Assembly (NCBI GenBank): GCA_016748015.1
Contig: JAAOMT010000334.1
Coordinates: 1 to 64,000 of the forward strand
DNA from: Geosiphon pyriformis uo1
Taxonomy: Eukaryota > Fungi > Glomeromycota
Direction of reading: 5' to 3'
DNA length: 64,000 nucleotides
The notes beneath the pieces are model-generated. The model worked only from the letters and a program-made list of their open reading frames with translations, ran no database searches and was not told the DNA's origin. Of the stretch, positions 10,693 to 53,929 are shown piece after piece (position 1 is the stretch's first letter; each line of letters begins with the position of its first letter). Both the position numbers and the translations under genes were made by a program.

Positions 10693-12221
10693 ATGGTCCT
10701 ATTCACGGTTCGACATATAAAACAAGTGGTTCGTTTTGAACATGTTCTTTGGAATAGCGTCTTCCTTTTTGGTTTATTTAGTATTCTCTGTATTTGGGTG
10801 CTCTTTGCAAAGAAATGGAATGAAAATGACGTATATTTTAAAATTCTAGACTCAAATCTTCATAGACACAGAGAGTTTAATTTATTTTATGAGAGGATAG
10901 AAAATATTTCATTTCAGCATGCTAACTTGTACAGTAAAAGATATTTCCAATTGAATCAAAAAGATAACAAAAATAGAAATAATTTTGGAAAAAAGAGAAA
11001 CTCTAACTCTTTGGCAAATGAGGCTTTTATAGATTGGTTTAATCGTCAACCACCACGCTATATCCCAAAAATTTTACGACAGACTTCTTCACAAGAATGG
11101 ATTTTCTTGGCACAAATGGCTCGCTTAGCTAATACGGCGTATTGTTCGCGGAAAAATAATGTTGGCTCGGTCATGAAGGATCCTAAAATAAGAGGTAGAT
11201 AAAGAATTTTGATTTTCAGCAAGACTAATTTCCTTTAAATATTATAAAAAGAGAGTTGAAATATTGTAACTTGCTCTTTGATTTAAATGTAAAATTTTTA
11301 TTAATTCTATTTGATACCTTAAGCCCATGTTTTTGTCCCTCCATTTTCTAAGGACATTCTTGGCTATTTCAGAGGACAAACCTATACGCCAGAAGAATGG
11401 AGAAAGCGCAAGGTGCGATTAACACCTTTTGAATTTGGCCCTCTGATACCTAATCGTAAGCAAATAGCTTCTGTTGAAAAAAGTTGGAATGATGATGTGA
11501 ATGTAATGATGTCAGGCCTTCTTCAAAAAGTATTGCTTTTTTTGACTCCTGAGCAAAATAATATTATACTGATTGGTCATGGTGTCGGTGGAGGTAAAAG
11601 TTTTTTGTAATTCGAAATTGACCTTAGTAAGCGTTTTGATTGGTCGATCATTAGATTCCTAAAAACGATCCTTTGATTTTTCGTTAGTTTACGCAGTTCT
11701 AGCATTATTGGCTTTAAAAAAAATCTTTGCAAGTCAACATGGTTGGTTTGAGGAGGTAAAAATATCTGCAGTAACATTTGGGGAACCTCGTTTTGGTGCA
11801 ATCAATTTCGCTCGATACCTCGCTCAAACTGAATCCAAAATTTTCCGAGTCACCCACGCAAATGATTATGTGGTTCGTGAACAACTTTCTAAAACTGGCT
11901 TTCTAAAGTTTGAGCATCACCACAGCGAGTTTTGGATTACTTATGATTGTGAATGTTCAGAAGCTCTGGATCCTAACCGCCCATGGGTTAATTTCAATTT
12001 GTATGAGTGTCCTTCCTATGGAGATCATCCGGTAATTTATTTCTTGGAATAAAGTAAATATGTAGTATCATTCATTTTTTTTCCCGCTACTGACTATATT
12101 TTAGGATTGCAGTGCTAGTCAGATAGGAGATGATAAATCTTATATTGAAGCACATTTTGGTCCATATTTCGGGATCACAATGGGAGACTGCATTACAAAT
12201 ATGGGGGAACTTTTACATTAA
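10693..12221 (+). CDS. Class-3 lipase-like protein A (about 410 aa) with nucleophile Ser replaced by Gly; exons 10693-11194, 11324-11593, 11688-12031, 12105-12221
   Basis: GT-AG joins give an open frame with ANTAYC, YFRG, IGHGVGGVYAVL, VTFGEPRFG, RVTHANDYV, HHHSEFWI and HFGPYFG. N-terminal hydrophobic segment and KR sites precede the domain. Confidence 0.9.
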
Positions 12222-15128
12222 AATTAAAATTTCTTGTAATTTAATATAGTCATGATATTATATAATTTAAATCATTTTGGTAGAGAACAAAGTTTCATCG
12301 AAATTTATTCTTTTTGAAGGTGAAAACTTTTAAACTATTTTTTTTATTGAATTTCAAGATCTTATAAGGAGGCAATTTTTTTATCGAATTTCAGTTAGAA
12401 AATGTTACAGTCAAATCGCTCTAATATCAACTTTGTGAGACCAAATGCTGTCGTTGATATATAAAGAGTTGGATTAAGATAGAGTTAAGGATATTTTAAT
12501 TGACTTTAAAGAATGATATAAATTTAAAGTATTAATGATTAATTAATATTACACAACTTTTATATAGAAAAAATAATTTATATACAATAAATAAATTCTT
12601 TAAAATACATTTAACATTTGAATTTTAAAAATTGATATTTTGAAAATATAATTTCTTTATATTTCAAATTATTATTGGAGTTCAAATTTTGATTAATTTT
12701 AAAGTTCAGAATGAAAAACAATTTAAATATTATTTCAGCTAAAATATCTTGGCAATGATTCGCAAACTAAAGTAAAAATCATAATTTGTATCAAAAATAT
12801 ATAAAGTTTACAGAGAAAATAACAAACAAAATTAATCTATATATATTCTCTCATCAAAACAACATTATTTCTTTTGTTTAAAATATATAAAAAATGGCTA
12901 AATCTCATCACTTTGTACATTTTAAACTGTATATTTACCACAAATAATTACAAATATTGCAATATTGTTTTTTCATAAATAAATAAAAGTTTGATATTTC
13001 TTATTATATTTATTACTATTGTAATTATCTAAAATCATTGTAATTATATAATACAGATTTGTTTTTTGTATTAAAGATGACCAATAAAATTTTATGAAAT
13101 AATAATACTAGATAAAAAAAATAAAAGTAAGCTTAATAATATTCAATATTATTTAAATAAAAAAATTTCATATTAAAATATATATAATAATTTAAATTAG
13201 ATTGATATCAATATTGATAAAAGATCATATATTAGTTTATTTGTATCAAAAAATTTATTATTAAAGAGGTTGATAATAAAGAAGTGTAACTGCATAAACA
13301 AATAAAAATTTTAATGAATTTTTTGATCTAGATGGTATTTTTATTTGCTAATCAATTTATTATTTTATGAATGATCTTTTAAAATCAATAGATTTTTGTT
13401 AGAATTAATAATCCAGGAAGCTTGGTTTTTTGAAATTATTTCAATTTCATTGTATAAGAAGTCATTAATCTCAAAATAAAGCTAGATTTATAAAAAGAAG
13501 TAAATAATTGATTCCATTCATGATCAAATATTCAAACCAAATTATTTTGACTTCAGGTATCTACTTAAATTCAAACCATTAAGCAAATTTCATTGATGTG
13601 TTGTAATTGAATTTCGAAACTTTTAATAATATTCAAGGCTGAATTCCAAAATACATATTGAATCTGTGAAAATATTATGGTTGGATTTATGGCCACATTA
13701 TGGAGAATTTATTATTGAGATTACGTTAAATAGTTGAACTGTCCAAAGATTTCAAATTTAATTTTTAAGAAAAAGGGTAGAATTTATTATTTGAACGAGT
13801 AAATCTATAATTCGTTGTGTATCGGAGGATTCGGGATATTTCTTACAATCAGGTAAATTATTTTTAGTATTTCCTTTTAATAGCACATAGAAAAAAATCG
13901 AACTTAGAACATTATCCAATTTTAGTTTTGTCCTGTTAGCCATAAAATTAATTGGCATGTATAATTATTCACAATACTAGAGATAAGGTAATCACAGTGA
14001 ATCTAGATTTTAACGATACAATACATCACCTCCTCAAGGGTTTCAAAAATTGCACTATAGAGCAAAAGTGAAAAATCCAAAAATTTTAATTCAAAAGATT
14101 AGGATGAGAAGAATAATTGTTTTGTCCAAGGGTTGGGAATAAAGTTTAAAACTAGCACAAAATGCAAAAAGAATATATACATTAAAAATTCGTAAATAAC
14201 AAACATACTTTCATTTTCATTGATCATCCTGTAAGAAACGTTAAAAATAGAAGGCTCATTTTTAAAAGTTTTTCATAATTATGGAGCTCTAAACCCTTTT
14301 CGTAGGTTATGCCTAAATAAATATCGTAAAGGAAGAGAAATGAACGAAATTCAATAGATTAGTCATCTCTTATGATCAAAAACTATTATCCATCTTTACT
14401 TATTTGCTAGATCGACGAAACATGCTTCCCCTTCAATTATTAGAGGAAAAATAGTTGTCTCCAAGAGCAATTTTCATCATGACAAATCTAGTTGATATCA
14501 CTTTTGGTGATCATTTTTCTGCCGATACGGAAACCTAAAGCTAATAAAATGAAAATCATCATCCAATTTCATAATACTTGTAAATCTGATCTTGGGAAGC
14601 CCGATTTTCAAACAAAAAGGTTCGGATTAAACAGGATATTTTGATAGAAAGGATATCCATAAATATGGTTAGCCTAAATTTACATGTTGGCGAATTTGTA
14701 TTTGATTTTCAAAAAGTTAATTGATTCTGCATAAAGTCACTCTGGGATTAAAATGCACGTTACTATAAGATTTTTCGTATGATTGGATCTTGATCTCAAT
14801 ATGTCAAAGAGGGTTTTGTTTTACTCATCGTCAGATTCTTCTCATCTATTCTATATTTAGAAAAATTTTAGACGGGAAAGCTGATGAGGTAATATTCGCA
14901 CGAAATCTTTGAAGCTATTTTCTAATTAAATAAACATTGGAAACATCTAATATCAATTAATGATAGTATATTTAAAACAATGTAGATAGACTTCCGAACT
15001 TTTATTGCTCCCTACATAAAACAAGGGTAGCGTTTTTCCAACAGAAATTGCCAGAGAAGCGTAATTTTCTCTATCTTTTGATTTCCTATTATTCACCGTT
15101 AAAAAGTACTTTATCTCATATAAAAAAA

Positions 15129-16304
15129 ATGTCGAGATCAATTGTTGAAATAGAAAATGGACCGACAATTTATACGCCATTACTTCCAAAAGGTCTCACT
15201 CGTTTCAGCACATCTTCAAATGTGACTCGAAACATAATAGTACTTGTTTCTTCACTAGTTGTGTTGAACATCGCAGCATGGTTTGGAGCAGCGGTTGCAT
15301 TTCAAGATTATCCCTCGCTTATGGGTACCGCTGCATTAGCCTACACACTCGGTTTACGTCATGCAGTTGATGCAGACCATTTGGCAGCAATCGATAATGT
15401 CACTCGTAAATTACTTCACTCAGGAAAACAACCAATATCAGTCGGACTCTATTTTTCGCTCGGACACTCAACTATTGTTATCTGTACTTCTGCAGCAATT
15501 GCCGCTACAGCAACCGCAGTTAAGGATAAATTGGATGAGTTCCAAGCAATCGGTGGTTTAATAGGTGCAATAGTATCAGCAACGTTCTTATTTGTGATAG
15601 GAATCATGAATTTGATCGTGTTCATATCAGTATTCCGTTCTTTCAAAAGAATGAAACAAACCGGATCTTTTGAAGAAGAAAGTATCGATGAAATTATGAA
15701 TAATTCTGGAATGCTTGGTAGATTTTTTGCACCCATGTTTCGATTCATCGATTCAAGTTGGAAAATGTATCCGCTTGGAGTTTTGTTTGGATTCGGTTTT
15801 GACACGAGTACCGCAGTTGGCTTATTGGGAATTGCGGCGTTTCAAGCCAATCAAGGGTTACCCATTTGGCTAATCATGATTTTTCCTATGTTGTTTACCG
15901 CTGGAATGGCATTGATTGATACGGCTGATGGAATTTTAATGCTAGGAACTTATACCTGGGCATACATCAATCCTATTCGAAAACTTTATTACAATCTTGT
16001 CATCACTCTATTGTCGGTATTGGTTGCATTTATTGTTGGTGGAATCGAATTCTTGAATATTATTGGCGAAAAACTACAACTTGAGGGTCCATTTTGGGAT
16101 TTCTTTTCAGGATTAGGTAAAAATTTTGGGACCATTGGATATTTGATTATTGGGTTGTTTGTTGGCACTTTTCTCTTGGCGAAAATTTTCTATCAATTTT
16201 CCGGCCTTGAAGATTTGGAGCATAAGTTCGATACTCCTGTTGAGGAAGATACTACAAATACGCATAAAATATATGCTGAAACAGATGATGGGATATCGGG
16301 CTAG
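15129..16304 (+). CDS. High-affinity nickel/cobalt permease, NiCoT (HoxN/NixA/Nic1) family, 391 aa, intronless
   Basis: Family signatures RHAVDADH, FSLGHSTIV, GFDTST and DTADG, plus several hydrophobic segments. First ATG is at 15129; the ORF-track start at 15048 is a TTG. Confidence 0.95.
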   Translation: MSRSIVEIENGPTIYTPLLPKGLTRFSTSSNVTRNIIVLVSSLVVLNIAAWFGAAVAFQDYPSLMGTAALAYTLGLRHAVDADHLAAIDNVTRKLLHSGKQPISVGLYFSLGHSTIVICTSAAIAATATAVKDKLDEFQAIGGLIGAIVSATFLFVIGIMNLIVFISVFRSFKRMKQTGSFEEESIDEIMNNSGMLGRFFAPMFRFIDSSWKMYPLGVLFGFGFDTSTAVGLLGIAAFQANQGLPIWLIMIFPMLFTAGMALIDTADGILMLGTYTWAYINPIRKLYYNLVITLLSVLVAFIVGGIEFLNIIGEKLQLEGPFWDFFSGLGKNFGTIGYLIIGLFVGTFLLAKIFYQFSGLEDLEHKFDTPVEEDTTNTHKIYAETDDGISG

Positions 16305-18533
16305 TTTTAGAAGAATCGATAATAAGAACGAATGTGCAAATAATTATAGGTTATTACAATTGTGTAAATAGCATTAGTTTTTGGTAAAATAGCTATTTCT
16401 TTTGAAAAAAGAAATTATGCTTGTAAAATTTTCAATTTTAACAAGATCTTTAACATTAAATGTTAAGAAATCCAAAAAATATCGAGTTAAAATGAAGCAA
16501 TGAAGTCACAAAAATCGAACCTATTTAAGTTTTCGTTACGCGTCAAAAAAATTTCTTACTGAAAAATCTCTATATATATTATCAAATGATGACATTCAAG
16601 CTTTAATAGCGGCCTAATTGATTTATATGAACAATTTCGTTGAGCCTAGTATTGGCTTTTCTTTCTTTTTTACTTTGTTTATCAAGGGAAAATAACATTT
16701 TCTAGGCTGATAAGTATAAAAAAAATAATAATCTCTTTGAAAAAAAAGTTGAATAAACAAATTTCAGCGTTTCCAATGTTAAAAGAAAAGTTTTTCCTAA
16801 GCTCAAAGCTGTAAGATTTGTTTCACCAAAATTCGAAGATTACTTTCAATCATTTGCTATCTTGGGCAATTACGCAATCACAACAATAGGGAAAAAAGAA
16901 ATATAACGCCGATTTTTTTGACAGACATAGTTTACCATACAATGTATATATAGATACATCAAAAATTTATAAAACTGGTTTTCGCGTTGGTATAACCTGC
17001 CCTTTTTTCCTTTATAATAAAAATTCATATAAGGTTAAATAATAAGACTTACAAAAAAGGTGATTTTATATAATGACATATTATTTGCAAATGAACTATT
17101 GTTTAAAACCTAAGGTCAAAGAACTATAATAAACTTTTTTTTCATTTGGTTTAAGTAATATTTTAGTTTGAAATTTAATAGCTTTTTATATTTGATGTTA
17201 AATTTGTCATTATAAAAGATAATTTCGAGAGTTTTTGTGACATATTTTATTTCGATTAATTAAGCTTTAATTTAAAACTTTTCCTTTAAAAAAAAATCCA
17301 AAAACGTAAAAATTCATTACGTCAAAGAATAAATAGAATAATAAAGATCTTAAATTTTAATAATTTAAAAATATGTTAAAAATTTTCATTTTTATATTTT
17401 TGCACATCTCAAAAGCGACAAATCTTGTTTGAGGATTGGAATTTTTTATACAATATAAATATTGTTTATGAAATACAATATCATAAAACCTTATAAAAAT
17501 GCTGTCTATTGAGACTTCTAAATATAATGCATAGCGAAAAAAAGTTTGAAAATGCGTATAAATTATTTTTTTCCTTCCTTCCTTCCTTTAAGGAACTAAA
17601 GCGAGCTCATTTAAAGGGACATTTATGTTCAAAAAATATATAAATCATTAACTTTTTCTCCTTCAAAACAACCCTGGGTGATGCAATTTTTTTCTAAATT
17701 CCTTTCCGAGTTTATTTGCTTCAACTCTCAACTTTGAGACTTATCATAATTCTATTTATTAAGCTCAAACAGTTTTCGGCGAACTTGTTTAGCAGCATCG
17801 ATGTTCGACAGAATGCTCTCCAAACACTTTTCTATTATTCAAAATAATAAGGTAGAATAAAGTAATTTGAAATATTCTTCATGAGGAGCCTGTCATGAGG
17901 CTAGTCGTGAAGAGATGACTAAATGTGTACAAATTATAATAATAGAGCGCTTTAACCCTCAATATAACGAGTTGTTGTCAACTTTCTTTTTAAAAATTTC
18001 TAGTGGATTAATAACCAATCCATTTTTAAATATCTTTATTGAACAATATTTCAAAGACATGATTCATTTTGTTTAATAAGAACTTTTAATTACTATGGTG
18101 AAAAGACAGTCATTAAAAACCCTGGTGCAGAGTTTGGTAAATTATTTAATATAAAATTATTAATGAAAAATGAAAATTCGAATTCAAGTAGCCCCTTTAC
18201 AATTTCAAAGAATCAGGCCTCTACCAAATTTTTACCAAGACTCGAATATTGTTTTGAGCTTACATTTCGAAGATTTTTAGATATTTAAAGTTTGCCTTAA
18301 TTAATTAATTTCTATTGTATTTTGAAAATCTATCGTATGAGTAATAACAAAGCCACATCTTGATAATGCTTAAATATACACTATTTGTAAAAGTCTTTCA
18401 AGAAAATTTTTTAATTTTGTTTCAAATCACAATTCAAATTTGTAAAATTCTAAACTACATATGAAGCAGCAAAATGCTAGAATTTTGTAACTTTATAAAA
18501 TAATTATTTGAGAATTTCATTATCAAATATCTA

Positions 18534-22403: not shown

Positions 22404-22461
22404 ATATTATATATTATATATTATATATTATTATATATTATTATATATTATTATTATTATA

Positions 22462-22513: not shown

Positions 22514-22514
<1 letters not shown>

Positions 22515-25200: not shown

Positions 25201-25234
<34 letters not shown>

Positions 25235-32279: not shown

Positions 32280-34951
32280 AATTCAAATCTTAAAAAAAAT
32301 AATTATATTAAAAGAATTCTCAAAGATTAAATAATAATAATAAATGAAAAGCTCACCATTTGTAGAAAATGTAGGTTTCCAAATTATTTGACTTGTATAT
32401 CTTGTCATATCATGGACCACACCTTTTATCTCTTTGGAATCAAGTTTTTTTCGACGAACAGATTGGTTTAAGTTACAATTATCGCGAGCAGCAATAACTC
32501 TTTATTGAAGCGCTTCTACACTGTCACGGTAATGTAGATTCTGATTCTAATTTTTTTCCATTACTTCCTGAATACATTGAGGTGTATGCTTTTCGATTAT
32601 AGGGCTTCTCCCTGAATTATATTCAATTGAATGTACATACGATTTATAACATCATTCCACAGTCTGTCGCCTGAAATAATTTCCCAGGAAATGATAGCAC
32701 AACTATAAATATCGCTGTGCGTGGTATGTGGGGACAGGTTACAAACTTCAGGTACTAGGTATTGAACAACATCATAAATTTTGCTCGACTATGGAGCGTT
32801 ATCGGCAGGACGACAAAACCCAAGATCAGAAATGACAACTTTTAAGGGATTCATTTTCAAAACAAGGATATTTCCAGGATGTAAGTCCCCATGCACGAGT
32901 TTTGGGTCATGTATAAATCTTAGCCCACCAGCGATTTGAAAAAGAATATGAAGTAAAATGTCCCAAGTAAGAGTGGTTTCGTTCACTTTTAGAAAAGCTC
33001 TGAGGTTTTCATATTCTGCAAATGGTAAAACCATAACAAATTCTTTATTTGTAATGTCTTTTGTGATTCCGTAGCATTGAAGGATATATTTGCAAGAGGC
33101 ACAATTAAGATGGGCAATAAACTATTTTTATGCGTTTTTTAGTGTTTGAAAAAGAAAAAGAAAAGTGAATAATATAAATCAGAAAAATTGATTAAACGAA
33201 ATTGCCCCAATTGAATTGACATATTCTATGTTTTGGCTATTTTTAAGAGATTTCAACGCAACTCTGGTAACCCCACTTCTCTCATATTTTTGATTTTCCT
33301 TGTTCCAAAATAGAATCTTGCCTCTCTCCCATGTACCTTCTCTAACAACACCGAATCCTCCCGTTCCCACCTTTTCTAAAAATTTGATTTGTTCAGGAGA
33401 AATTCACTCTAGACATTCCCTGGAGCTTTCAGAAATATCCTGTGTATGGTATATATAATGACTAATATTTGATAATCGTGATGATTCACAAGAGTTACAC
33501 CAAACTGGATCTTTTAATGTGCGATAACATTCTGGACATTTCGGCAATACATTATTATTACTTTTATCAGGATCACAAAATGGACATATAAGAGATCCAG
33601 TAATAATTATACCCAAGTTGCCACATTTAAGACACCTGAATTCATCTGAAAGTTGGTCAAAGAAATCTTCAAAATCAAAGAACTCTCTTTTAGAAGTACA
33701 TGGGTATTTTAACCCTCGATTTTGCAATCCCAAAATGAAGCGTTCTAGGTCATTTTGATCCTGTAAAGTGAGTTTAAGGGCGTTCAAATCAGGAAATTAC
33801 TTTGATAACTTGAGCTATTTGTCTCTGCTGCTTTCGAATAGATTTCAAATGCTTTTTCTAAGTTTTTCGTGGTTCACCATTCATTTTGATAGCACCATTT
33901 AAGTTTGTATTTTAAATTTTGATTTCCCGCCTTTGCTGCTTTTAAATAGAATTCGAATGTTTCTTCTAGACTTTTTATTGTTCCCCATCCATTTCGATAA
34001 TACATTCGATTATTAGTTTGTGAACTCGAATTTCTCACTTTTTCCAGATCATTCACTGTTTCTAGTCCATTTGGATAATATTCTCTGAGACTGAGTTCTC
34101 CAAGTAAACCTCCCGCCTCTACTGCTTTTGAATAGAATTCAAATGCTTTTTCATCATTTTTCGTTGTTCCTCGTCCATTTTGATAACAACTTCCAAGAGC
34201 GTTTTGTGCACCTGAATGTCCCGCCTGGGCTACATTTGAATAGAGCTCATATGCTTTTTCTAAGTTTTTCGTCGTTCCCCATCCATTAGCATAAAATATT
34301 CCAAGATTTTATTTTGCCTTTGTATCTCCCGCCTCTGCTGCTTTTGAATAGAGCTCAGATGCTTTTTTCTAAGTTTTCCGTCGTTCCTTCTCCATATTCA
34401 TAACAATTTCCAAGAGCTGCTTTTGAATAGAGTTCAAATACTTTTTCTGAGTTTTTTGTTGTTGCTCCTCCATTTAGATAACAATGTGCAAGATTAAGTT
34501 GTGCATCTGAATGTCCCGCCTTTGCTGCTTTTGAATAAAGTTCAATTGCTTTTTCCTCATTTTTCGTTGTTCCTTCTCCATTTTGATAACAATATGCAAA
34601 ATTGTATTGTGCTTTTATATCTCCTACCTCTACTGCTTTTTAATAGAGTTCAAATGCTTTTACTCGATCTTTTAAAGCACCAATTCCATTGTTGTAACAA
34701 TGGCCTAAAAAGAATTACCCAAAAGAATTTTCTTCATTCGCTGCTTTCTGAATTTCTAAAAACACTTTTTTTAGATTAAGAATGGTTCCAATTCCATGTT
34801 CTAAAGAAAAGCCGAGCAAAATATTATCTATTCAACGCTTTGAATTTTTCTTATTCAAGAAATTGAACAATTTTTTTTTGATGACAATTAATGTTCCTTC
34901 AAGCCAGTCGAGGGGTAAAGTTGCGTTTTCAATTGAAGAAGTTGAAGACAT
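32280..34951 (-). pseudogene. Sel1-like repeat + Cys-rich linker + tyrosine-kinase-like protein kinase pseudogene
   Basis: Repeated YxNGxGTTKNxEKAFELYSKAAEAG units at about 33790-34800, CxxC clusters, GTGGFGVV, VALKSL, HGDLHPGNIL, ISDLGFC and YLVPEV. In-frame stops (e.g. TAG at 32789) and frameshifts. Confidence 0.85.
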
Positions 34952-35537
34952 GATTTTCAAGCAACACAGAAGGATTATCAAACTTTGAAGATTTTAGATG
35001 GTTAAGTAAAGATTTTTAAAGAGTTCGTCTTGCTAATAAATAAGGATTTCAACCCATTATTTTGTCAGGTCTCAAACGCTAGAATATGAAAATATATATG
35101 CTACTTCATAAAGGTTAGGCTCACTCATTTAAATTGCTTAAATGACAAAATGCTTTTCATTATCCTATTGTTATTGTTAGTTTAAATTAAACCTTAAAAT
35201 TGAGTTTCAATAGCTCATTAGCAAAATTTTTTTATTTGCATAATTTAGTTCTAAGGTTGCAGATAGCCCTTAAATATTGGTGATAACTTTAGTAACAAGT
35301 TTAATATAATTTCCTTGACCCTCGTTTGCATAAGCTCTGATTTAGAAACTGCTTTATAAATTTTATAAATAATTAACATGAAAAATCCTAAACCTCGATA
35401 TTCATTAAAACTTTTAAAGGTTAGATTTCATAATTTATATTACTTAAAGGGGATAATGATCGGAATCAAACTTAAAATGACTGCGAAGATGTGACTCAAA
35501 GTATTATGACTTTGGATTTATGGATATAAACATAAAT

Positions 35538-38195
35538 TCCTTATTTGGTTTACCTGTATGCTATGTGTATCTTTCAAAAAATTTATTTTCTCTCTTACTG
35601 TTAATATTAAAAAAATAACCACTTCTCCATTTAACAAGAATTCTTAAAGTTTGAATGTCTTATTCTTCGAAAGTGTAAACTGTTACTAACTCAAAGAAGC
35701 TTTTGGGACATCAAAACAGGGTATGAATAAATTGTTTTTTACCAACAATTCATTCACAACTATTTTAATTCAATATGTGAAAACTTCTTAGCAAGGAAAT
35801 AATAAAGTATTCAGTAATAATCAAAAAGTATTGTATTTTTATTATTTATATAAAATTAAACTTTAGGCTTAATTTTTCTGTTAAAAAATTAAAAGTCTAT
35901 ATAAAGTTGTAGCCATTGCATGCTGCATTTTATTTTTGAGTAGTATATTAGAAAGTTATTTTCAAGAAGCCAACTAGGAAGGTCATCATTTAATTGTTAT
36001 CTTTGACATTTTGCTGTAATCAAATTTTCATGTATAAATCAATGGAAGCCTTCCCTTCTTTTTAAAATCCTTACTTTTCCTTTGCCATAAATCACTTGCT
36101 TTAATGAAATCACGATAATTTAAAGTGGATATTATCCCACAATTTTTAGAGTATTAATTATTAAATTTCAAATTACGGGTTGAAGACAACAATCCAAAAC
36201 TTTTCTACTTTTAATTACTAATAAATAAGGTTGATTTACATTAAGAATTAAGTTTAATTTTGTTTACCTTCTTGAGTCTGGGTGAATAATCAGGGAGTAA
36301 ATGTTCAAATACCTCTAATAATGTTAATCGAAGAAAATCTATAAAACTCCGAAACTACTAAATTTTTGAATACTAAGAACACTTTTTGATGAATTATTGT
36401 AGTTTTTGATTTGCCAAGTTTACATGAACCACATAACCTGTTGAATTGTAAGATAATTTTTATTTAATTCAATCAGTAAAAAGCAATGAAACCAAACATA
36501 CCTTAGCAAGATCAGGCATGACGGTACCAAATGTTCCACTAAATGTTGGCTCTTCTTCTGAAGAAAAAGATGCTGCCTCGCTCGAGGATGAATGTTGAGT
36601 ATAATATCTGAATTAATCTTATTAGTTGAATATTTTAAAAATGAGCAAGCAGCCAAAGTCAAGAATTTATTTAAAATTTACCTGGCCCTCCTACAAAGCA
36701 AATGTGCATATCCAACTGGTGTGACCTAAATGGAATTGAACAAAATAGAATAGAATAACATGTTGAAGAAGATGGGAAACGAAATTTGGTTTTCAAAGTT
36801 TACCAAAGAAACTGCTCGCGTGCACCTGTGCGAAATAGTGTGAATAAAGAGTTTCTTTTGAGAAATTTGAAGAGCTTTGCAAAAAATGATCTGGAAAAAA
36901 AATTAAAGTATTCACTCACCTCGCAAATGTATATGTTAAATAATATGTCAAGGTTTGAAGGCTGATAATATTATGAAATTAAGATGTTGGAAAAGTTTTT
37001 ACACACAAAAGTTTGAAATATTTGAATATGTGAAAATATTCTACCTATCTGGATCGAATTCATTCTCGTCCCAAAGAACATGGTAATGCGTTGGACGACT
37101 CGTGCCTTGTAAACCGGCATGACTTTGAAGATCTATAAGAAAACGAGTAGAATCAGCTACTCAAAATCTTTCATACAACCGTTAGAGATAAACTTACAAA
37201 AGTCGAATTCGAAGGGATGGATAATCATAGTCTCGACAACAGTCCCAGGTAAACAATTTCCTGTTCGATCAGCATCCTTCCCAATGATAGGGAAAAACCG
37301 AGTGTGATGTCTCTTTTGCACGATAACAAATGTAATTGTCGGACGATAAGTTATATCCAAGGATTGGCAGGCTACTGGTAAATTAAAAAAAATACAATTG
37401 TTATTTTTCTGTAGGAATGATCTCTTGAAACCACATTTACTCAAAGAAATTACCTTTTATCGCCTTAATTTCACCTTCCATAATTTGAGCAAACTGGCCT
37501 TCTGATACACCGTCACGATAAAATAAAATTCTTTCGGGCTTTCGGCCACAAGTCTGGTAAAAATTTTTCAATAATTCTCTGACCATATCTGCAAGATCAG
37601 AAATAATATCACTTTTCGCAGTTTGGCAGCGAATGGAAGCAGCGTAACGCGAGGCTTTGGCATCCATAGTTGCGCAAAGAGTAGCGATTGATGGACTTGC
37701 CGGGTTATCTATCAAGTTTTATTTTTGAAGTTAGTTGAAAGAAAGTGAAGCATTTTTTTCATTTCCGAACATTAAAGCTTACTTGGGTTAGAATGAGTGA
37801 CATCTGCTCCCATGACAATTGTCGGTCTATCGCTAATGAATGGAATATCATTCGATCCCAAAAACCAATTCATTCCACCGAGCTTCACATTCATTTTTAA
37901 ACCGACGTTGCCACAATACTGCTTTTTTGCCTGCATCATATGTCGCGCTTGTATACATTGGGTGGCTATCCCGATTACAGTATCGCTTACTCGTTTTATC
38001 TCTGCGTAAAGCTGCTCTCCAGTATTTGGCAGAACACAAATAATTAATTGTGGTTGAGCATTAGCAGCAGTCCCAGCACGAAGCCATGCCTGTTTAAGAA
38101 TCGCATCAATATTTCCTTGAGGATTAGCGTGCAAGATCGGAGGGGCCTTATTTGGTATATTCAAGCCAATTTCTATGGCGGTAATAACAAATTCC
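35538..38195 (-). repeat. 2658-bp direct duplicate of 38216-40873 (3' part of Argonaute plus downstream flank), probable scaffolding artefact
   Basis: ORF translations are identical at a constant 2678-bp offset, and both copy boundaries abut the N gap. Confidence 0.9.
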
Positions 38196-38215
38196 NNNNN
38201 NNNNNNNNNNNNNNN
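38196..38215. other. Assembly gap (20 N)
   Basis: Run of N in the sequence. Confidence 1.
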
Positions 38216-39097
38216 TCCTTATTTGGTTTACCTGTATGCTATGTGTATCTTTCAAAAAATTTATTTTCTCTCTTACTGTTAATATTAAAAAAATAACCAC
38301 TTCTCCATTTAACAAGAATTCTTAAAGTTTGAATGTCTTATTCTTCGAAAGTGTAAACTGTTACTAACTCAAAGAAGCTTTTGGGACATCAAAACAGGGT
38401 ATGAATAAATTGTTTTTTACCAACAATTCATTCACAACTATTTTAATTCAATATGTGAAAACTTCTTAGCAAGGAAATAATAAAGTATTCAGTAATAATC
38501 AAAAAGTATTGTATTTTTATTATTTATATAAAATTAAACTTTAGGCTTAATTTTTCTGTTAAAAAATTAAAAGTCTATATAAAGTTGTAGCCATTGCATG
38601 CTGCATTTTATTTTTGAGTAGTATATTAGAAAGTTATTTTCAAGAAGCCAACTAGGAAGGTCATCATTTAATTGTTATCTTTGACATTTTGCTGTAATCA
38701 AATTTTCATGTATAAATCAATGGAAGCCTTCCCTTCTTTTTAAAATCCTTACTTTTCCTTTGCCATAAATCACTTGCTTTAATGAAATCACGATAATTTA
38801 AAGTGGATATTATCCCACAATTTTTAGAGTATTAATTATTAAATTTCAAATTACGGGTTGAAGACAACAATCCAAAACTTTTCTACTTTTAATTACTAAT
38901 AAATAAGGTTGATTTACATTAAGAATTAAGTTTAATTTTGTTTACCTTCTTGAGTCTGGGTGAATAATCAGGGAGTAAATGTTCAAATACCTCTAATAAT
39001 GTTAATCGAAGAAAATCTATAAAACTCCGAAACTACTAAATTTTTGAATACTAAGAACACTTTTTGATGAATTATTGTAGTTTTTGATTTGCCAAGT

Positions 39098-42000
39098 TTA
39101 CATGAACCACATAACCTGTTGAATTGTAAGATAATTTTTATTTAATTCAATCAGTAAAAAGCAATGAAACCAAACATACCTTAGCAAGATCAGGCATGAC
39201 GGTACCAAATGTTCCACTAAATGTTGGCTCTTCTTCTGAAGAAAAAGATGCTGCCTCGCTCGAGGATGAATGTTGAGTATAATATCTGAATTAATCTTAT
39301 TAGTTGAATATTTTAAAAATGAGCAAGCAGCCAAAGTCAAGAATTTATTTAAAATTTACCTGGCCCTCCTACAAAGCAAATGTGCATATCCAACTGGTGT
39401 GACCTAAATGGAATTGAACAAAATAGAATAGAATAACATGTTGAAGAAGATGGGAAACGAAATTTGGTTTTCAAAGTTTACCAAAGAAACTGCTCGCGTG
39501 CACCTGTGCGAAATAGTGTGAATAAAGAGTTTCTTTTGAGAAATTTGAAGAGCTTTGCAAAAAATGATCTGGAAAAAAAATTAAAGTATTCACTCACCTC
39601 GCAAATGTATATGTTAAATAATATGTCAAGGTTTGAAGGCTGATAATATTATGAAATTAAGATGTTGGAAAAGTTTTTACACACAAAAGTTTGAAATATT
39701 TGAATATGTGAAAATATTCTACCTATCTGGATCGAATTCATTCTCGTCCCAAAGAACATGGTAATGCGTTGGACGACTCGTGCCTTGTAAACCGGCATGA
39801 CTTTGAAGATCTATAAGAAAACGAGTAGAATCAGCTACTCAAAATCTTTCATACAACCGTTAGAGATAAACTTACAAAAGTCGAATTCGAAGGGATGGAT
39901 AATCATAGTCTCGACAACAGTCCCAGGTAAACAATTTCCTGTTCGATCAGCATCCTTCCCAATGATAGGGAAAAACCGAGTGTGATGTCTCTTTTGCACG
40001 ATAACAAATGTAATTGTCGGACGATAAGTTATATCCAAGGATTGGCAGGCTACTGGTAAATTAAAAAAAATACAATTGTTATTTTTCTGTAGGAATGATC
40101 TCTTGAAACCACATTTACTCAAAGAAATTACCTTTTATCGCCTTAATTTCACCTTCCATAATTTGAGCAAACTGGCCTTCTGATACACCGTCACGATAAA
40201 ATAAAATTCTTTCGGGCTTTCGGCCACAAGTCTGGTAAAAATTTTTCAATAATTCTCTGACCATATCTGCAAGATCAGAAATAATATCACTTTTCGCAGT
40301 TTGGCAGCGAATGGAAGCAGCGTAACGCGAGGCTTTGGCATCCATAGTTGCGCAAAGAGTAGCGATTGATGGACTTGCCGGGTTATCTATCAAGTTTTAT
40401 TTTTGAAGTTAGTTGAAAGAAAGTGAAGCATTTTTTTCATTTCCGAACATTAAAGCTTACTTGGGTTAGAATGAGTGACATCTGCTCCCATGACAATTGT
40501 CGGTCTATCGCTAATGAATGGAATATCATTCGATCCCAAAAACCAATTCATTCCACCGAGCTTCACATTCATTTTTAAACCGACGTTGCCACAATACTGC
40601 TTTTTTGCCTGCATCATATGTCGCGCTTGTATACATTGGGTGGCTATCCCGATTACAGTATCGCTTACTCGTTTTATCTCTGCGTAAAGCTGCTCTCCAG
40701 TATTTGGCAGAACACAAATAATTAATTGTGGTTGAGCATTAGCAGCAGTCCCAGCACGAAGCCATGCCTGTTTAAGAATCGCATCAATATTTCCTTGAGG
40801 ATTAGCGTGCAAGATCGGAGGGGCCTTATTTGGTATATTCAAGCCAATTTCTATGGCGGTAATAACAAATTCCCTAACAAAAGCTTGGATAGCCTGCATA
40901 GGGAAAGCATGCTCCGAACCAAACGCCACAATAACCCAAGATAAAAGTATAGCTCCGGTAGCCAGTTTTTTATCTCGAAGATTCCAGACGCCCTCACGCG
41001 GTTTGAAAACTGCTTCGCGTGAGCTTGGATTATTATTAATAGAGGGAGGGGGTAAGATTCTTGCTGGGATCTGAAATAAAACAAAAAATTGTAAATGTGT
41101 TTTAGGAAAAATGACTCGAGTTATACCAGAAAAGAAATAGGCAAGTTACCGAGACCATTTCATTTGATATTTTCATGTGGAAATTCTGCAAGTATTCATT
41201 ATCACGATAGTTCAATATTTCAACACCTTGCTTGATTTTGTTTGCACGCAGATGTGGAGGCTGACAAGTAAACATGATCATATCGGCGGTTTGTTTATCG
41301 TTAAGCTTACGAATATGTCTTTGGCCCTAAAGAACATATATTAATGTTTGAAAATATGTCTGAAAAAATATATCAAGTTAAAGGAACGAGTTTACCTCAA
41401 CAACTTCACATACTTCAACAGGAAGATACACATCTTTTCTCACAACCACACAGGGAAGATGGGGAAACTCGAGGGCCTTACCATAAACACGTTTAAAATA
41501 TGTGAAAACATCGATTTGTCCTTCATTTGTAGTGAATTTGGTGTTTATAGCCGGGGAATCAGTCAATTTGAAAACTTTGAATTGTCGTCTCGAGGTCACA
41601 TCTCCGCGATGAGTGACACGTATTTTTAAATTTTTAATGGCTTTTTCTATTTTTATTCGATCTCTGTCAGTCAAACCACGTCTAAGATCATCGTAGTTTC
41701 TAAGGCTGAGTAATTTGACAAACATTTGTAGTAAAGGACCACCCTCGTAAAAAGCCGTTGCACTAAGATCAATATTTATCATCATACGACCTATTGTAAA
41801 AATCGAAAAATGGATAAGCTCTTTGAAATCCGAAGCTTAATAAGAAAAGACATTAAGAATACCTGGAGTCGGTCGAGCAGATTGATAATAACCTTGCCTG
41901 ACTTCGGAACCGCCAAACAATGGTTGAGAACCTTGTGGTGTATAGAAAGAGCGACCAACGGTAGTGTATTTCATCGAAGGGAGATGTCTAATTAGCACAT

Positions 42001-45791: not shown

Positions 45792-46206
45792 ATTGTTGTT
45801 GTTGTTGTTGTTGTTCAAGCTTAAAAGTTTTGAGATGAAAGGTATTTTATACTTTTGAAATAGAAATTACTTCTTTTAATATGAAAAATATTATGACGAA
45901 GAAAATTTTGAATTTTGAATCACTTTTTTTATACTTTTGAAAAAAACTTTGACCTTTTTCCTCTGGATTTTAAAGTCCTTTATAGAATTCAGAATATTCA
46001 AAAAATAGACAAAAGAGTAATGTACGGAGAAAACGGAGAATAGATTATCAGGTAAACACGGGATATCAAAACCGATTTTTAGATTAATTGTATCAATGAA
46101 AGAATCAATCTTGAAAGAGTTTCATAAAAAAAAAAAATGACATAGTGATTAATTTATTCGGACTTTGTTTAAGAAATAAAGTTATTAAATAAATGTATTC
46201 ATGAAA

Positions 46207-46223
46207 TTATTTAAATTTTTTTA

Positions 46224-46272
<49 letters not shown>
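46207..46272. repeat. (AAT)n microsatellite
   Basis: Perfect trinucleotide run within an AT tract. Confidence 0.9.
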
Positions 46273-47745: not shown

Positions 47746-48174
47746 TTAATTTTGAAATTTTATGCTTCCAAGATCCTCTGTCATTTTTAACAGTTCATCT
47801 GTGGTTAAATGGTTAAAATCTAGTTCTTCAATTAAAAACTGACCACCATTCTTTGGAACGTTCGTATTAGATATTTCTATTATATTATTAAGTTTTTTTT
47901 GGGCTTCTTGAATTCGAAGTTGCATCTCGTCGATTATTTCTTCAGGTATATCTTCTTCTTTTTCTTCTTCTTCTTCTTCTTTTTCATCCTCATATACACA
48001 AGGATAACGTTCATTTATATAAGGATTTAATCGTTGAAAATTTGATTTAGGCATTTGATTTTTACGAGCCGTAAATGTTTGTTGATTATTATTATTATTA
48101 TTATTGGAGTTAATTGGTGATGCATTTCGTCTTTTAATCGAGAAAAATATTTTGATTGATTTAATTGGAGCCAT
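47746..48174 (-). CDS. Small coiled-coil protein 2 (142 aa, acidic tract)
   Basis: ATG ORF with RLNPY, IQEAQKKLNNI and LDFNHLTTDELLKM motifs shared with its neighbours. Confidence 0.65.
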   Translation of the reverse strand: MAPIKSIKIFFSIKRRNASPINSNNNNNNNQQTFTARKNQMPKSNFQRLNPYINERYPCVYEDEKEEEEEEKEEDIPEEIIDEMQLRIQEAQKKLNNIIEISNTNVPKNGGQFLIEELDFNHLTTDELLKMTEDLGSIKFQN

Positions 48175-48816
48175 TGGTGATTATTGATTTACTTTCAAAT
48201 CTAAAGAAATTGATAGCTTTGAACTTTTGATATATTTATATATTTTTTTTTCCTATTAGTGTATATTAATAATAATTGGGATAAAAATAGGATCTCGGTT
48301 ATTATTATATCATCTGCAAAGATACGTTATACAAAGCTATTATTAAAAACTTTAGATTTACTACTAACGGAGATTGTCTAAATATAGATATATTTTTTTT
48401 AATTTTAGTGTGTGTTTCACGCTAGGTTTCTCCTAAAGAACTTTTATTCTAATTTTCATATCACTTTTTTTTAAAAGTAATTTATTATGAGCCGTCGTAT
48501 CAAAAAAGTAACAGAATTTTAGATTCCAATATCTTTTCCCCAAGTATTAAACAACTTTAGCCAATTTTTTATTTCCCAGTTTATTTTCATAAAATATAAT
48601 TTTTTATTATAAAATTCAAATTAATAAGATTACTCTATAATCGATTGCAATCCTCATAAATCTTAAAAGCTTAATATTTGATAAATAATCAAAAATTTTT
48701 TTTCATAAGAAAAGATCAATATACAGTCTATATATAGCCTGATTCTATGATATTTGAACGTATTTGAACTTAAAAGAAAGAAAGAAAGAAAGAAAGAAAG
48801 AAAAAATGTGTAGTTT

Positions 48817-49272
48817 CTAAAGGGAATGAAAATCTTGGAAAAATGTTGGCATTTGTAATGATTCTAGCTTATAATCTTGATTATCCTTCTTATCAAGTTT
48901 ACCATATTCAATGTTTATTGATAGCTTTAATAATTCATCTATGCTAATATCTGATAAATTGACTTCTTTATTGGTAATTGGATCATTATTTACAAAACAT
49001 TGTAAATTCTTTGTCGAAAGCTCCGTCAAATAATTTAATTTTTGTTCAATCTTGTTAAAACCTTTCTCTAATGTGTTTATATATTGTTTGAACTCATCGT
49101 AATCACAGCAAATTTCCTCATTTTTTTTGACTTCTTTATTAAGTGAATCACGCTTAGAACGATAATTATCGCCTCTTACTTTAAAGATATGCTTCCGTCC
49201 AGTCATATCAAATAAAGTTGAATTGAGGGATTTCCGTGGAGTTTGCGATAGGACTGAGCTCACAGGTGGCAT
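48817..49272 (-). CDS. Small coiled-coil protein 3 (151 aa)
   Basis: ATG ORF with FNKIEQKLNYL and VNLSDISIDELLKL motifs shared with its neighbours. Confidence 0.65.
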   Translation of the reverse strand: MPPVSSVLSQTPRKSLNSTLFDMTGRKHIFKVRGDNYRSKRDSLNKEVKKNEEICCDYDEFKQYINTLEKGFNKIEQKLNYLTELSTKNLQCFVNNDPITNKEVNLSDISIDELLKLSINIEYGKLDKKDNQDYKLESLQMPTFFQDFHSL

Positions 49273-49969
49273 TTCGTTTTAATTTAAAAAAAAATTTTTG
49301 GTGAACTTTTAAGAGTAGAATAATAGTAAACAGCTTTAGAATTATTTGTATATATATATATATATATATCAACTTTACACTGCGAAAGTTGAAAAAATTT
49401 CTCGCTCTATATATATAGAAAATAATAATAATAATAATACTTGGCTAGATATTCATAATCGCCAATTGTTTCCCGAAATTAATCATTTTCCTTGGCATAA
49501 AAATTATGAATTATCTTATTTTTTTCAATAAAATATAAAACAATATGTAATAGAACTCAAATATTTTGCCATGCAACGTCAATACTGCAATAGAAAATTT
49601 AATAATAGCTAATATTCTAAAAAAAAAATTTTTTTTTATTCTTCGGATTAGAAAATGGCTTTTTTTTTTCACTTGAGAGATAAAAAAGGGCCATTTGTAT
49701 TAGACTTATGATTAATTTCCTTTCCATCCAAATTTAATTAATAAGCTTTTATTAATACTCAATATGATACTTTTTTCTAAAATTCCAAAAAATCTTGTTT
49801 AAAAAAAAGATCTTTTTAAAAAACTAGTCTTGATTCAAAAAAGAAAATGTCCAAAGAACTTCTCAATACAATTATGAAATAATAAAAACTTGAAATTTAA
49901 TTAAAATCTTAAAAGAGTAATTAATATTTTAAAAATTAGAATAAACAAATTACGCATTTATAAATTGAA

Positions 49970-50000
<31 letters not shown>

Positions 50001-51565
50001 AAACCAATGGCAAAGACACTTTTAAACAAAAAATTATTGATTTATAGAATAAAGAATATATATATATATATGTGTGTGTTTCGATTTTTTTTAATTCCAA
50101 AATAAATTGAAAAGTTTTTCGTTGACTTGGTCAAAATGCTTAAAAGTCTGACTTTTTCACAGAGAAAAATTGACTGTACTTCAGAAACCGGAGAAGTATG
50201 TCAAATTGCAAGTAGAATTATCTAAAATTAACAAAGACTTTATCTATCACTTATTATAATTCTTCTTTTAAACGCTAAAGAAATCAAAATTTTGCTTATA
50301 TTTCAATAAAGAAGGTGAATGGATTATTTAAAATGTCTCTGTAGTTTCTAAAAACTTTATGGCCATAGCTATCGGAGAACTGATTGTTTCATGCGACGAC
50401 ACAGTATTTTTTGTAGAGTGTTAACTAAAAACAGGGTTTGAATAATATTATGTTCAAAAAATATCTAAACTAAAAAATATTTCTAAAGGTTTTTTAAACG
50501 AAAGAATAAGGCTCTTATTTCGTGTAATCCGCTTTATAGAATTTTAAATGAAACTCTTTTCTTCAAAATAATCAGCCATCTTGAAGTTATGAAATGTATT
50601 TTTTTTTTTTCGTTTGAAATTTATGTATTCAAAGAGATTTCTAAATGATCAGTGTACATTAGAGAAAAAGCGTATATTTTGATAAGTGCACATTTAGAGA
50701 ATAAGAATATATTTAATCAATAATGTTAAATTATAAGTCCGTCTCTTGATGTCCGTAACTCGTTAAACTGATGTAGTCAACAAAATAATAGAGTTAAAAA
50801 AAGATGATCTTATATTACAATCTTTTAAAAAGAACAATGGCTTTGGTTTCTTAAATAATGTTGTGCAATTTTTTCGGACTATTATGGATTTTGTTTGAAT
50901 CTTCAATAATCCAAAAATTGATTCTAAAACACTTAATATTCGTAAAGAAAAATATTACATGAACAGAAAGATTTATTAAAAAAAACTTTTACTTTGTTAA
51001 TTATATCAATATGACAAGATAACTTAATATTTAAAATATTAAAAGAAAGATTTTTATCTATTGAACATACTATAAACAAATTTAGGTTATTTTTTACCAT
51101 TTATAAAGTACTGGAAAAGTTAATTTACATAATTTTTTATAATGACTCTCGAAATAAAATGGCAAAATAGAGAATAAATTTGAATCTCGAAATTTAAAAT
51201 TGATCTTTTACAGATAATTGTAATTTATTGACTTTCTCGAACAAAATATTATCAGTTATCTCTTATAATAAGTATATTTTCAAAGATATTTTTTAAGATC
51301 ATAATTAATTAATTGAATTATTCTCAAAATGTGCAAAGTTTAAACTGTCAAAGAAAAATATCTATATTTAAATGAAAGATAGTTGTTTAAAATAAAACAA
51401 AGATCTTCAATAATCATTTTATTTGCTTTGTAGAGCGCAAACTAAAAATTTTTACACTTATGAAATTATAGCAAAAGAATTCCAATTTTACACAATATAA
51501 AGATCCTATGAAACTAAAAGACTGGCATTTTGGGTCAGAAAAAAAAAGACTAAACAACCAAAAAA

Positions 51566-51567
<2 letters not shown>

Positions 51568-51639
<72 letters not shown>

Positions 51640-51652
51640 CATCATCATTATT
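51568..51652. repeat. (TAT)n/(CAT)n microsatellite
   Basis: Long perfect trinucleotide run; it creates the spurious poly-Tyr ORF. Confidence 0.95.
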
Positions 51653-52446
51653 ACCAAAAATTTCAACAAAATAATAAAATGGAATCCAAATATTTTTTCA
51701 TATTACAAAAATAAAACTTAAAATAAAAAATAAACTCATATTTAATAATTTCAAGAGATTTTGTAATCAAAAAAAAATATAAAAACAGTTTTAAAAACAT
51801 CTTTTAATATTAATAAATAATTAAAAGAAAAAACAGATAAAATAAACACCAAAAATATATATTAAATTTTTAATAATCTGATTTGTAATTAATGGAAACA
51901 AAAAAGTGATTTTAATAAAACAATAATTTAAAACATAAAAATAATATTTATTAAAGAATTTTTAGGAATAATAAAGAGAAATTTAGTTAATTCAATAAAA
52001 TATGAATGTGAATTAAGTATTGTAAATAATGGGAAATATATATATATATTATGAAATTTTCTTTAATAAATTTATTCTTTAATAATTCCCAGATAATAAT
52101 TAATTATTCAAAGACTAAATTATTTTCAAAAGATTGTAAACAATTATTAATTGCGTAATTGAAATCAGTCTTTTTATTGTATTGGTAATATTTTATCCCA
52201 ACTTTATAAACACTTTATTATTAACGTAAAATCAAAATGATATTATAGATCAAATATTTAGAACCTATTAATGCTCAATATACTTAAAATAAGATAAGGA
52301 AGCTTTTAAATGACAAGACTTGTAAAATTTGTTACCTTGAAAGTAAATCATCTTAAAAAAGTTATTTGGAAAAATAAGTTATTAAGAATTTCAATTAGAT
52401 TATATTGTGCTTTACTAATATTTTGCGTTGAAAAGTTCTTTTTGGA

Positions 52447-53929
52447 TCAAAACTTACCACAATAACCCATTATGATCCCGAAATATGGACCAAAGTGATT
52501 AATTGTACTTGAGTCTGTAATTGATTGTCCAGAATTACATTCCTAAAATTATTTTCCATATAAATGTAATAATAATAATAATAATATAAGGTTTAATTAC
52601 CCTCATAAAAAATTTAAAAAAAAGGACAATTTATTTTCTGCACTAACCGTATTTTCTATAGCTTGATCATTACCAGGAATCCAAAACTTTTCCTGAATAA
52701 ATTCTTGCACTCTAATTAACTTTTTTTCTTCATTTTCTTTGAATCGTCCACAATCCCATATAATTTCATTAGAAAATATTGTATTTTGAGAGCAATCACA
52801 ATCATTTGGTCCAATCCATATTTCACTTTCATGATGTTTCATTATTGAGTTCTCATTTTCAATTGGAGGAAAATGTGGGAAGTAATCATTTTGATGAGTT
52901 ATTCTTGTGACCTTTACTAGTTCATTCATCATTCTAGCAAACATTATATTTCCAGTTCTTGGTTGACCAAAAGTAAGAATTGAAATTTCAATTGATTCGT
53001 TTAACAGATGGATTGGTGATATAAATACGCGTAAAAGATTCATTATTGCGTATGATAGGCCTGCTATCGCGGCATAAGCTGGGTTTTTTTTTCCGATTTA
53101 AAAAGAAAAGAGACTTAGAATTAGCAAAATAAATATATAATACTCTAACTCTTCATTATTTGAACTAACCACCACCAACACCATGTCCACAGAAAATTAT
53201 CTTTTTATATCCCGTACGCATAAACAGAAAATTCATTTTGTTTAAAATAGGTCTCATCATAATTGAAACATCAATAAACCATTCTTGATCCACTTTTACT
53301 AGTTCGTTTTTCTTCATTCCTTCCGTACTAAATGTTACAAGCTGGTTTTTTCTATCTTGCCACTGTGTTTTTGTGAAATGGGGACCTTTAAAGAATGCAA
53401 TGATTGATTTTTCATTTTTTTCCACTATCATATCAGCTATTAAATTCGTATAAACAAGTAGACAGTGAAAAAATTTTAAACGAGGTTACTTTATTTCAAA
53501 AAATTCCTGAAATTAAAATTGATTGAAAAATAGTTAATTTCACAAAATACCCTTGATTTTGGTCCCTTGTTTTACCCGTTCCCCAATTTGATTGTAAGGT
53601 AAGCAATAAGGAATATTAGAAGACTCAGCTATCAATTTTAATCGTTGGTATTCCTGGGAGCTGTTAAAGCTTAATACTCTTTTCTTTGGGTAGCCTTCTT
53701 CATTATTATCAACTGATCTTTTAAAAAAAAATTTAATGCTATCATTTTCAAATGATTTCACTGAAAGTGAAAATTGAGGGATTTCTTGAATTTCATTATA
53801 AATTTTTTGATTTCTATTAGTTAAAATATGCTGTGAAAAAGAATATATGTATTCTAAAGAGTTGAAATAATAAAATATTTTCGTTAGAAAAATAATTTTA
53901 AATATGAATATCAAAAAGAGCTGTTGCAT
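52447..53929 (-). CDS. Class-3 lipase-like protein C (about 390 aa) with nucleophile Ser replaced by Gly; exons 53929-53551, 53436-53170, 53078-52648, 52542-52447
   Basis: Spliced frame with SNIPYC, FFKG, CGHGVGGAYAAI, LTFGQPRTGN, RITHQNDYFP, HHESEIWI and HFGPYFG. Intron positions and phases match proteins A and B. Confidence 0.9.

Follow-up and report, generated by a model that had tools for sequence, protein, structure and literature searches.

Serine-less class-3 lipase homologues of Geosiphon pyriformis: three members of a large and probably non-hydrolytic family

Class-3 lipases require the serine of a GHSxG motif (the nucleophile elbow), and the Ser or Thr of their FRGS/T motif contributes to the oxyanion hole. 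Serine-less pseudoenzymes with the alpha/beta-hydrolase fold are nevertheless a known kind, represented by plant EDS1/PAD4/SAG101, by neuroligins and by ABHD5. Neuroligins and other cholinesterase-like adhesion molecules, as well as insect yolk proteins, have lost the serine (it is Gly in neuroligins) and are reused outside the cell for binding; they are of the COesterase or pancreatic-lipase type, animal, present in few copies, and share with the proteins described here only a superfamily-level relation. This account concerns three genes, g1, g2 and g3, of the glomeromycotan fungus Geosiphon pyriformis uo1, which encode class-3 lipase homologues with glycine in place of the nucleophile. They lie in a stretch of 64,000 nucleotides (positions 1 to 64,000 of contig JAAOMT010000334.1, assembly GCA_016748015.1), referred to as the window. 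No other fungus is known to have cyanobacteria inside its cells; the closely related arbuscular mycorrhizal fungi are dependent on lipids from their hosts.

An initial annotation of the window, made from its letters alone, proposed three intact genes of four exons with introns in phases 1, 1 and 0, each with a GGT glycine codon at the nucleophile elbow, and in the DNA both proposals hold. g1 occupies 10693-12221 on the plus strand (exons 10693-11194, 11324-11593, 11688-12031 and 12105-12221; 410 aa; a homology model, NCBI G9A89_002574). The other two are on the minus strand: g2 at 20152-18534 (exons 20152-19540, 19449-19153, 19028-18721 and 18647-18534; 443 aa; NCBI G9A89_002576, KAG9298139.1, here P0003) and g3 at 53929-52447 (exons 53929-53551, 53436-53170, 53078-52648 and 52542-52447; 390 aa). 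All introns are GT-AG and all three spliced frames are free of stops. The glycine codons, read in the DNA, are at 11581-11583 (plus), 19165-19163 (minus) and 53182-53180 (minus). The translations also bear out the other residues that had been picked out. In g1 these are FRGQ, the elbow GHGVGG, the Asp motif NDY, a CxC motif CEC and the His motif HFGPYFG; in g2 they are FRGR, GHGEGA, DDY, CDC and HWGPYFG; in g3, FKGP, GHGVGG, NDY, CDC and HFGPYFG. The residue after F(R/K)G is thus Q, R or P, and the CxC follows E(F/I)WI in each protein. Both the nucleophile Ser and the Ser/Thr after FRG are missing from all three proteins, while Asp and His are present. The proteins stop 12-17 residues past the His motif, and the region that precedes the lipase-like domain is long (126-215 aa). 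(Database searches were run with single exons or annotated proteins; the spliced models were used for alignment, trees and dN/dS.)

Profile matches and a fold prediction both point to a lipase fold. Against a curated Pfam cut-off of 22 bits for Lipase_3 (PF01764), the g2 protein P0003 scores 61.4 bits (E 1.2e-16) and exon 3 of g1 scores 37.4 bits (E 2.8e-9), and scores of 53.8 and 47.9 bits are obtained with the paralogues closest to g1 and g3, respectively. Fold prediction covers g2: an AlphaFold2 model of P0003, with 68 family sequences in the input, has a pLDDT of 82 and a pTM of 0.81, and all of its top 40 Foldseek matches in the PDB are class-3 lipases or feruloyl esterase A (FaeA), at E values of 1e-13 to 1e-10. 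FaeA heads these matches together with lipases of Rhizomucor, Rhizopus and Yarrowia, the target TM scores being 0.7-0.77. A HMMER alignment places the g2 glycine on the catalytic Ser133 of Aspergillus niger FaeA and the g2 Asp on the FaeA catalytic Asp; in the entry for the S133A mutant of FaeA it is the alanine that occupies the column of the g2 glycine. The exon-3 profile likewise aligns the Asp with D201 of Thermomyces lipase (TLL). Apart from the disulfide cysteines, no Ser, Cys or Thr has newly become invariant. With the nucleophile serine removed and the oxyanion Ser/Thr gone, the g1, g2 and g3 proteins are therefore predicted not to be serine hydrolases.

The closest described relatives are the fungal class-3 lipases and FaeA (Rhizomucor miehei lipase, 3TGL/4TGL; Thermomyces lanuginosus lipase, 1DT3; A. 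niger FaeA, 1UWC). The Geosiphon proteins share with them the fold and the motifs FRG, GHxxG, FGxPRxGN, THxNDxVP, E(Y/F)WI and HxxYFG, together with the catalytic Asp and His, the disulfide that joins N- to C-terminus, in the case of g1 and g3 also the lid Trp, and an N-terminal region that resembles a targeting or pro-segment. They differ in the change of Ser to Gly, in the Q, R or P at the oxyanion position, in an extra CxC plus two further cysteines, in the length of the N-terminus, and in being present in hundreds of copies. Plant EDS1/PAD4/SAG101 are alike in having a Lipase_3-type domain that is used non-catalytically, and PAD4 and EDS1 are among the sequence and fold matches. In contrast to the Geosiphon proteins, these have a C-terminal EP domain and act as cytosolic or nuclear heterodimers, and EDS1 and PAD4 keep the serine; the Geosiphon proteins, by contrast, terminate directly behind the His motif, begin with a hydrophobic segment, carry disulfide cysteines and are without the serine. 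Lipase_3 is the one domain that Pfam finds in them, and an EP domain at the C-terminal end is absent. ABHD5 (CGI-58), as described in a preprint (bioRxiv 10.1101/2025.05.06.652485), is also a serine-less alpha/beta-hydrolase pseudoenzyme; it binds to the surfaces of lipids and acts as regulator of a true lipase. It differs in being a cytosolic, single-copy ABHD protein outside Lipase_3, with Asn for Ser and no disulfides. The literature searched, to which the Geosiphon genome paper did not belong, has no description of a fungal family of such size that derives from Lipase_3 by a change of Ser to Gly, and no paper found there connects Geosiphon with these lipases.

How large the family is can be judged from the elbow and the intron that follows it. 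A DNA pattern for G-H-X-x-G-[GA] followed by a phase-1 donor matches 445 times genome-wide and 9 times in a reversed control, so that the combination is not a chance occurrence. (The assembly searched has 128.3 Mb in 792 contigs at ~28% GC, the window being its contig C430; the published Geosiphon assembly is given as 129 Mb in 795 scaffolds, the largest of 2,733.91 kb, at 29.25% GC; PMC9453076.) The elbow residue is Gly in 320 of the 445 matches (72%), Ser in 49 (with AGY codons in 40 and TCN in 9) and something else in 76. This is the tabulation that the initial annotation had called for, here run on the Geosiphon genome, and it bears out what had been suggested there: a Lipase_3 expansion, which proves to be mostly Ser-less. 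In a first look with Pfam Lipase_3, 783 candidates are found genome-wide. From the elbow count, at least about 320 Gly-elbow genes would belong to the family in Geosiphon pyriformis. Elsewhere the genome also encodes canonical lipases, which have FRGT and GHSLGG, share the intron position and use AGY codons for the serine, and the glycine is thus a real trait of the family and not an oddity of decoding. Because those serine codons are AGY, a single A-to-G transition (AGY to GGY) separates Ser from Gly. The traits that mark the serine-less Geosiphon family are all found in g1, g2 and g3: the GHGxG[GA] elbow, the phase-1 intron, the CxC and two further cysteines, the Asp and His, the hydrophobic N-terminus and the four exons.

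The constraint on individual positions is seen in a set of 187 domains, which comprises the best 150 of the 1,216 matches that a profile built from exon 3 of each gene yields among 1.84 billion representatives, paralogues found by protein search and the three window models. At the nucleophile position, Gly is found in 140, Ser in 16, Ala in 13 and Asp in 2. The catalytic Asp is kept in 178 of 181 and the His in 131 of 148; for the Gly-type domains the corresponding figures are 139/140 and 105/116. The elbow GHGxGG is itself highly conserved, with GHD variants also occurring. The position after FRG is mostly P, K or R; Ser or Thr is rare there, even in the Ser-bearing Geosiphon members. As to distribution, all 39 non-Ser relatives of traceable origin are from Geosiphon, and the five traced relatives from elsewhere (a fly, a nematode, Massospora and two from Brassica) are all GHS. 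Thirty matches were traced through cluster look-ups and ~100 further non-Ser matches carry no origin; word-indexed protein searches, with 5-11 matches each, do not seriously test whether such proteins occur in other organisms.

The family is old and its members are highly diverged, as the initial annotation had held. The three proteins are 28-33% identical in pairs, and a FastTree phylogeny of 160 domains places them in three separate subclades: g1 with P0019 (51% identity, support 1.0), g2 with P0151 (0.96) and g3 with P0015 (62% identity, support 1.0). Parsimony assigns Gly to the root of the Geosiphon ingroup, and Ser members turn up at seven scattered points of the tree; the sampling is biased toward relatives of the Gly queries, and reversion to Ser is not proven by this tree. 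The position of those Ser members inside Gly clades, and their lack of the oxyanion Ser/Thr, are compatible with a regained serine. g2 (at 19171-19154) belongs to a GHGEG subtype, with Glu directly after the Gly, that accounts for 20 of the 140 Gly domains. The lid Trp, which 97 of 158 domains keep, is found in 3 of 17 members of that subtype, as against 91 of ~125 in the rest. g3 is a lone member of its subfamily, the main tandem array of which is on contig C378. (Tandem arrays of this subfamily are placed on C378, at about 3.7-71 kb, on C706 and on C19, with at least 7 copies on C378 and several on C706.)

Are these genes maintained? The conjecture that they are maintained by selection is supported by dN/dS ratios below 1. 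Compared with its nearest paralogue, g1 has a dN/dS of 0.24-0.37 at a dS of 1.0-1.4, and g2 (compared with L045) 0.39 at a dS of about 1. For g3 and four copies of the tandem array the values are 0.38-0.54 at a dS of 0.42-0.56, with dN/dS equal in the N-terminal region and the domain, so that the pairwise range for the three genes is 0.24-0.54. A test confined to g3's own branch uses codons that are conserved among eight sister and four outgroup copies. Of its four conservation thresholds, the first three give a dN/dS of 0.19-0.25, with Fisher p values of 0.0007-0.007, and the strictest, which leaves 61 codons, gives 0.09 (p 0.066). The window copy g3 is therefore itself constrained. Frames of ~400 codons also remain open in DNA of 28% GC. 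Together, these sequence comparisons indicate that the Gly-elbow family is under long-term purifying selection.

Each protein has a strongly hydrophobic stretch near its N-terminus (17-residue Kyte-Doolittle means of 2.2-2.7) that starts at residue 23 in g1, 24 in g2 and 4 in g3, and matching segments are found in ORFs upstream of the nearest paralogues of all three. Six cysteines are conserved, the CxC being invariant and joined by further cysteines, and the pair equivalent to the disulfide between N- and C-terminus of Rhizomucor lipase has been lost together in g2 and its paralogue. The six cysteines and the hydrophobic N-terminus fit folding in the secretory pathway. Of the original designation of these proteins as secreted, the hydrophobic segment stands for all three, but in g1 and g2 it is internal: their N-termini resemble type II signal anchors, whereas the N-terminus of g3 is more suggestive of a cleaved signal.

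The available RNA evidence concerns g1. A 738-nt RNA contig from one public run maps to 11090-12172 with three exact GT..AG deletions and exon-only coverage. The second and third introns are borne out by it, as is the GGT glycine codon, at which no other letters are seen. In contrast, the acceptor of intron 1 is not the one that the gene model requires. The intron as spliced in this RNA is 11195-11372 on the plus strand (joint 11192>11371, cut +2; GT..AG). Its acceptor, TTTCAG|A at 11372, is 49 nt downstream of the acceptor that would keep the frame, at 11323, and it arises from the TTC AGA codons for the F-R of the FRG motif, where the paralogue has TTC AAA (F-K); the upstream acceptor, a weak AAG, is common to g1 and the paralogue. 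Splicing at 11372 shifts the frame, with a stop near 11420; the frame from the ATG ends after 183 codons, a stop closes the lipase frame shortly before the junction, and the full protein is consequently not encoded by that transcript. Thus, RNA bears out the proposed codon and two of the three introns but not the first acceptor, and the assertion that these are not decaying copies, which the open frames and splice sites support for all three genes, becomes doubtful for g1. g1 may have been disabled by splicing while its DNA looks intact. The contig is of low depth (9.9), and minor isoforms are not visible in it. A retrocopy was considered as the source of an intron-less contig and rejected: the assembly nowhere contains the junction of exons 2 and 3, and coverage is exon-only, which identifies the contig as derived from spliced RNA. 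The same run has another contig upstream of g1, at 9527-9746 on the plus strand. At its 5' end 10 letters are unmatched, it shows neither an obvious ORF nor a match in Rfam, and beyond it, at about 9822-9857, is an (ATT)n microsatellite.

What do proteins of this kind do? A nucleophile that is lost in a family that selection has kept suggests proteins that probably bind rather than digest, and the reading that we favor, as a reasonably probable one, is that g1-g3 are anciently diverged, lipase-derived pseudoenzymes that engage a ligand or partner without hydrolysis. Their origin would be a fungal class-3 lipase of the Rhizomucor/Thermomyces type that expanded into a very large Geosiphon family. 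A single A-to-G transition at the elbow (AGY Ser to GGY Gly) would have taken away the serine that accepts the acyl group. Retained are the core of the alpha/beta-hydrolase fold, Asp and His, in most cases the hydrophobic lid and its Trp, six cysteines and a hydrophobic N-terminal targeting segment. The proteins would enter the secretory pathway, which would display g1 and g2 at a membrane and release g3, and the former substrate cleft would then bind a lipid, another hydrophobic ligand or a partner protein and leave it uncut, with subfamilies each tuned to different ligands. The initial annotation had conjectured that they bind, sense or shield lipids at the cell surface, perhaps at a symbiotic interface.

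Several considerations weigh against so simple an account. Asp (99%) and His (about 90%) are retained to a degree that seems to exceed the needs of a pure scaffold and that leaves room for residual or new chemistry. The binding, the localization and the class of ligand are what we infer from sequence, and export in particular is read from hydropathy and cysteines. The dS values are near saturation for g1 and g2. The RNA evidence is for g1, from one contig of one run, and the transcript that it reveals cannot encode the full protein. Restriction of the serine-less type to Geosiphon applies as far as tested, which is to 39 checked proteins.

The proteins might instead serve as non-catalytic regulators or decoys of true class-3 lipases, either as co-activators in the manner of ABHD5/CGI-58, or by soaking up inhibitors or competing for the interface. 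Regulation of lipases by pseudoenzymes is a known kind of arrangement (ABHD5 is an example; bioRxiv 10.1101/2025.05.06.652485). In Geosiphon, canonical FRGT and GHSLGG lipases coexist with the serine-less proteins, Ser members are scattered through the Gly clades, and lid and core are retained. But ~320 copies at <35% identity seem far more than the regulation of a few dozen lipases calls for, and there is no pairing of Gly and Ser genes within the window. We regard this explanation as unlikely.

Alternatively, the proteins might still be enzymes, in which His and Asp activate water or another nucleophile, possibly the Glu of GHGEG, so that they would act as hydrolases or transferases by a non-serine mechanism. 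The near-invariance of Asp (139/140) and the frequency of His (105/116) in Gly-type domains speak for such chemistry, as do the high conservation of the GHGxGG elbow and the coherence of the GHGEG subtype (20 domains), which places an acidic residue beside the vacated position; the GHD variants point the same way. However, G, A, S, D, F and Y are all accepted at the nucleophile position, as would be expected if the constraint there were steric and not catalytic, the oxyanion Ser/Thr is lost, and the disulfide cysteines are the only Ser, Cys or Thr newly made invariant. Moreover, in lipase structures generally, the side chain at elbow position n+1 is normally directed away from the active site. 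Retained catalysis of this sort is a rather improbable alternative.

That some or all of g1-g3 are non-functional leftovers, transcribed or silent, is the least probable of these alternatives and most plausible for g1, whose sole transcript uses the cryptic acceptor and meets a stop after 183 codons and whose NCBI annotation is only a 138-aa artefact; it must contend with frames open over 390-443 codons and canonical splice sites in all three genes, with dN/dS <1 for all three (significantly so on g3's own branch), with an RNA record that is one low-depth contig (9.9) blind to minor isoforms, and with the annotation of a paralogue in which the same weak AAG acceptor is used productively.

Public annotation of these genes calls for some care. 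The NCBI model of g1 is KAG9298137.1, the 138-aa artefact just referred to. P0003 is identical to residues 128-443 of the g2 model and has the same three introns, but it begins at an internal Met. More generally, NCBI models of serine-less lipase-like genes in Geosiphon are often truncated, fused or fragmentary (KAG9298137.1, KAG9298139.1, P0019, P0015, P0151, P0001-P0017). g2 and several paralogues are annotated from an internal Met, so that the conserved hydrophobic N-terminus is dropped, and tandem copies are annotated as fusions of 500-1,286 aa with 2-3 lipase-like domains each.

The surroundings of the three genes can be dealt with briefly. Beyond g1, g2 and g3, no other lipase-like sequence is found in the window, and Rfam has no match within it. 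Between g1 and g2, at 15048-16304 on the plus strand, is a 418-aa ORF that Pfam identifies as a NicO high-affinity nickel-transport protein (E 1.8e-93). The neighboring relics had been described as full of stops, and one such relic does exist, at 33793-34960 on the minus strand, with several in-frame stops; it is a degenerate Sel1-repeat sequence that is unrelated to lipases, and the notion of decayed lipase relics in the window is rejected. An assembly gap of 20 N at 38196-38215 lies outside all three genes, at a distance of ~18 kb to g2 and 14 kb to g3. Its flanks, 35538-38195 and 38216-40873, are identical by blastn (100% over 2,658 bp, no gaps). Exact duplicate flanks of this kind are most likely an unmerged contig overlap, with the two sides continuous, in which case the true distance from g2 to g3 is 2,678 bp shorter. 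The duplicate flank doubles a piece of an Argonaute gene (ArgoMid and Piwi; ORF 40450-40929, minus strand).

Going further, it is conceivable, but doubtful, that the ~320 Gly-elbow genes constitute a diversified, exported ligand-recognition repertoire on the cleft of a dead lipase, the subtypes of which (for example GHGEG without the lid Trp, GHG[VI]GG with it) would read lipids or lipoglycans of Nostoc or of the soil, or else that they embody a serine-independent His-Asp chemistry new for this fold. For g1 the lesson would be a more modest one: that two adjacent codons for F and R, TTC AGA, can give rise to a cryptic acceptor by which an intact-looking copy is silently put out of action. For the family as a whole, if the reading as non-hydrolytic, lipase-derived binding proteins is true, hundreds of selected and probably exported lipase folds that are not serine hydrolases would be among the largest pseudoenzyme expansions known, and the recognition of lipids or surfaces would be a major, unstudied part of the Geosiphon symbiosis.

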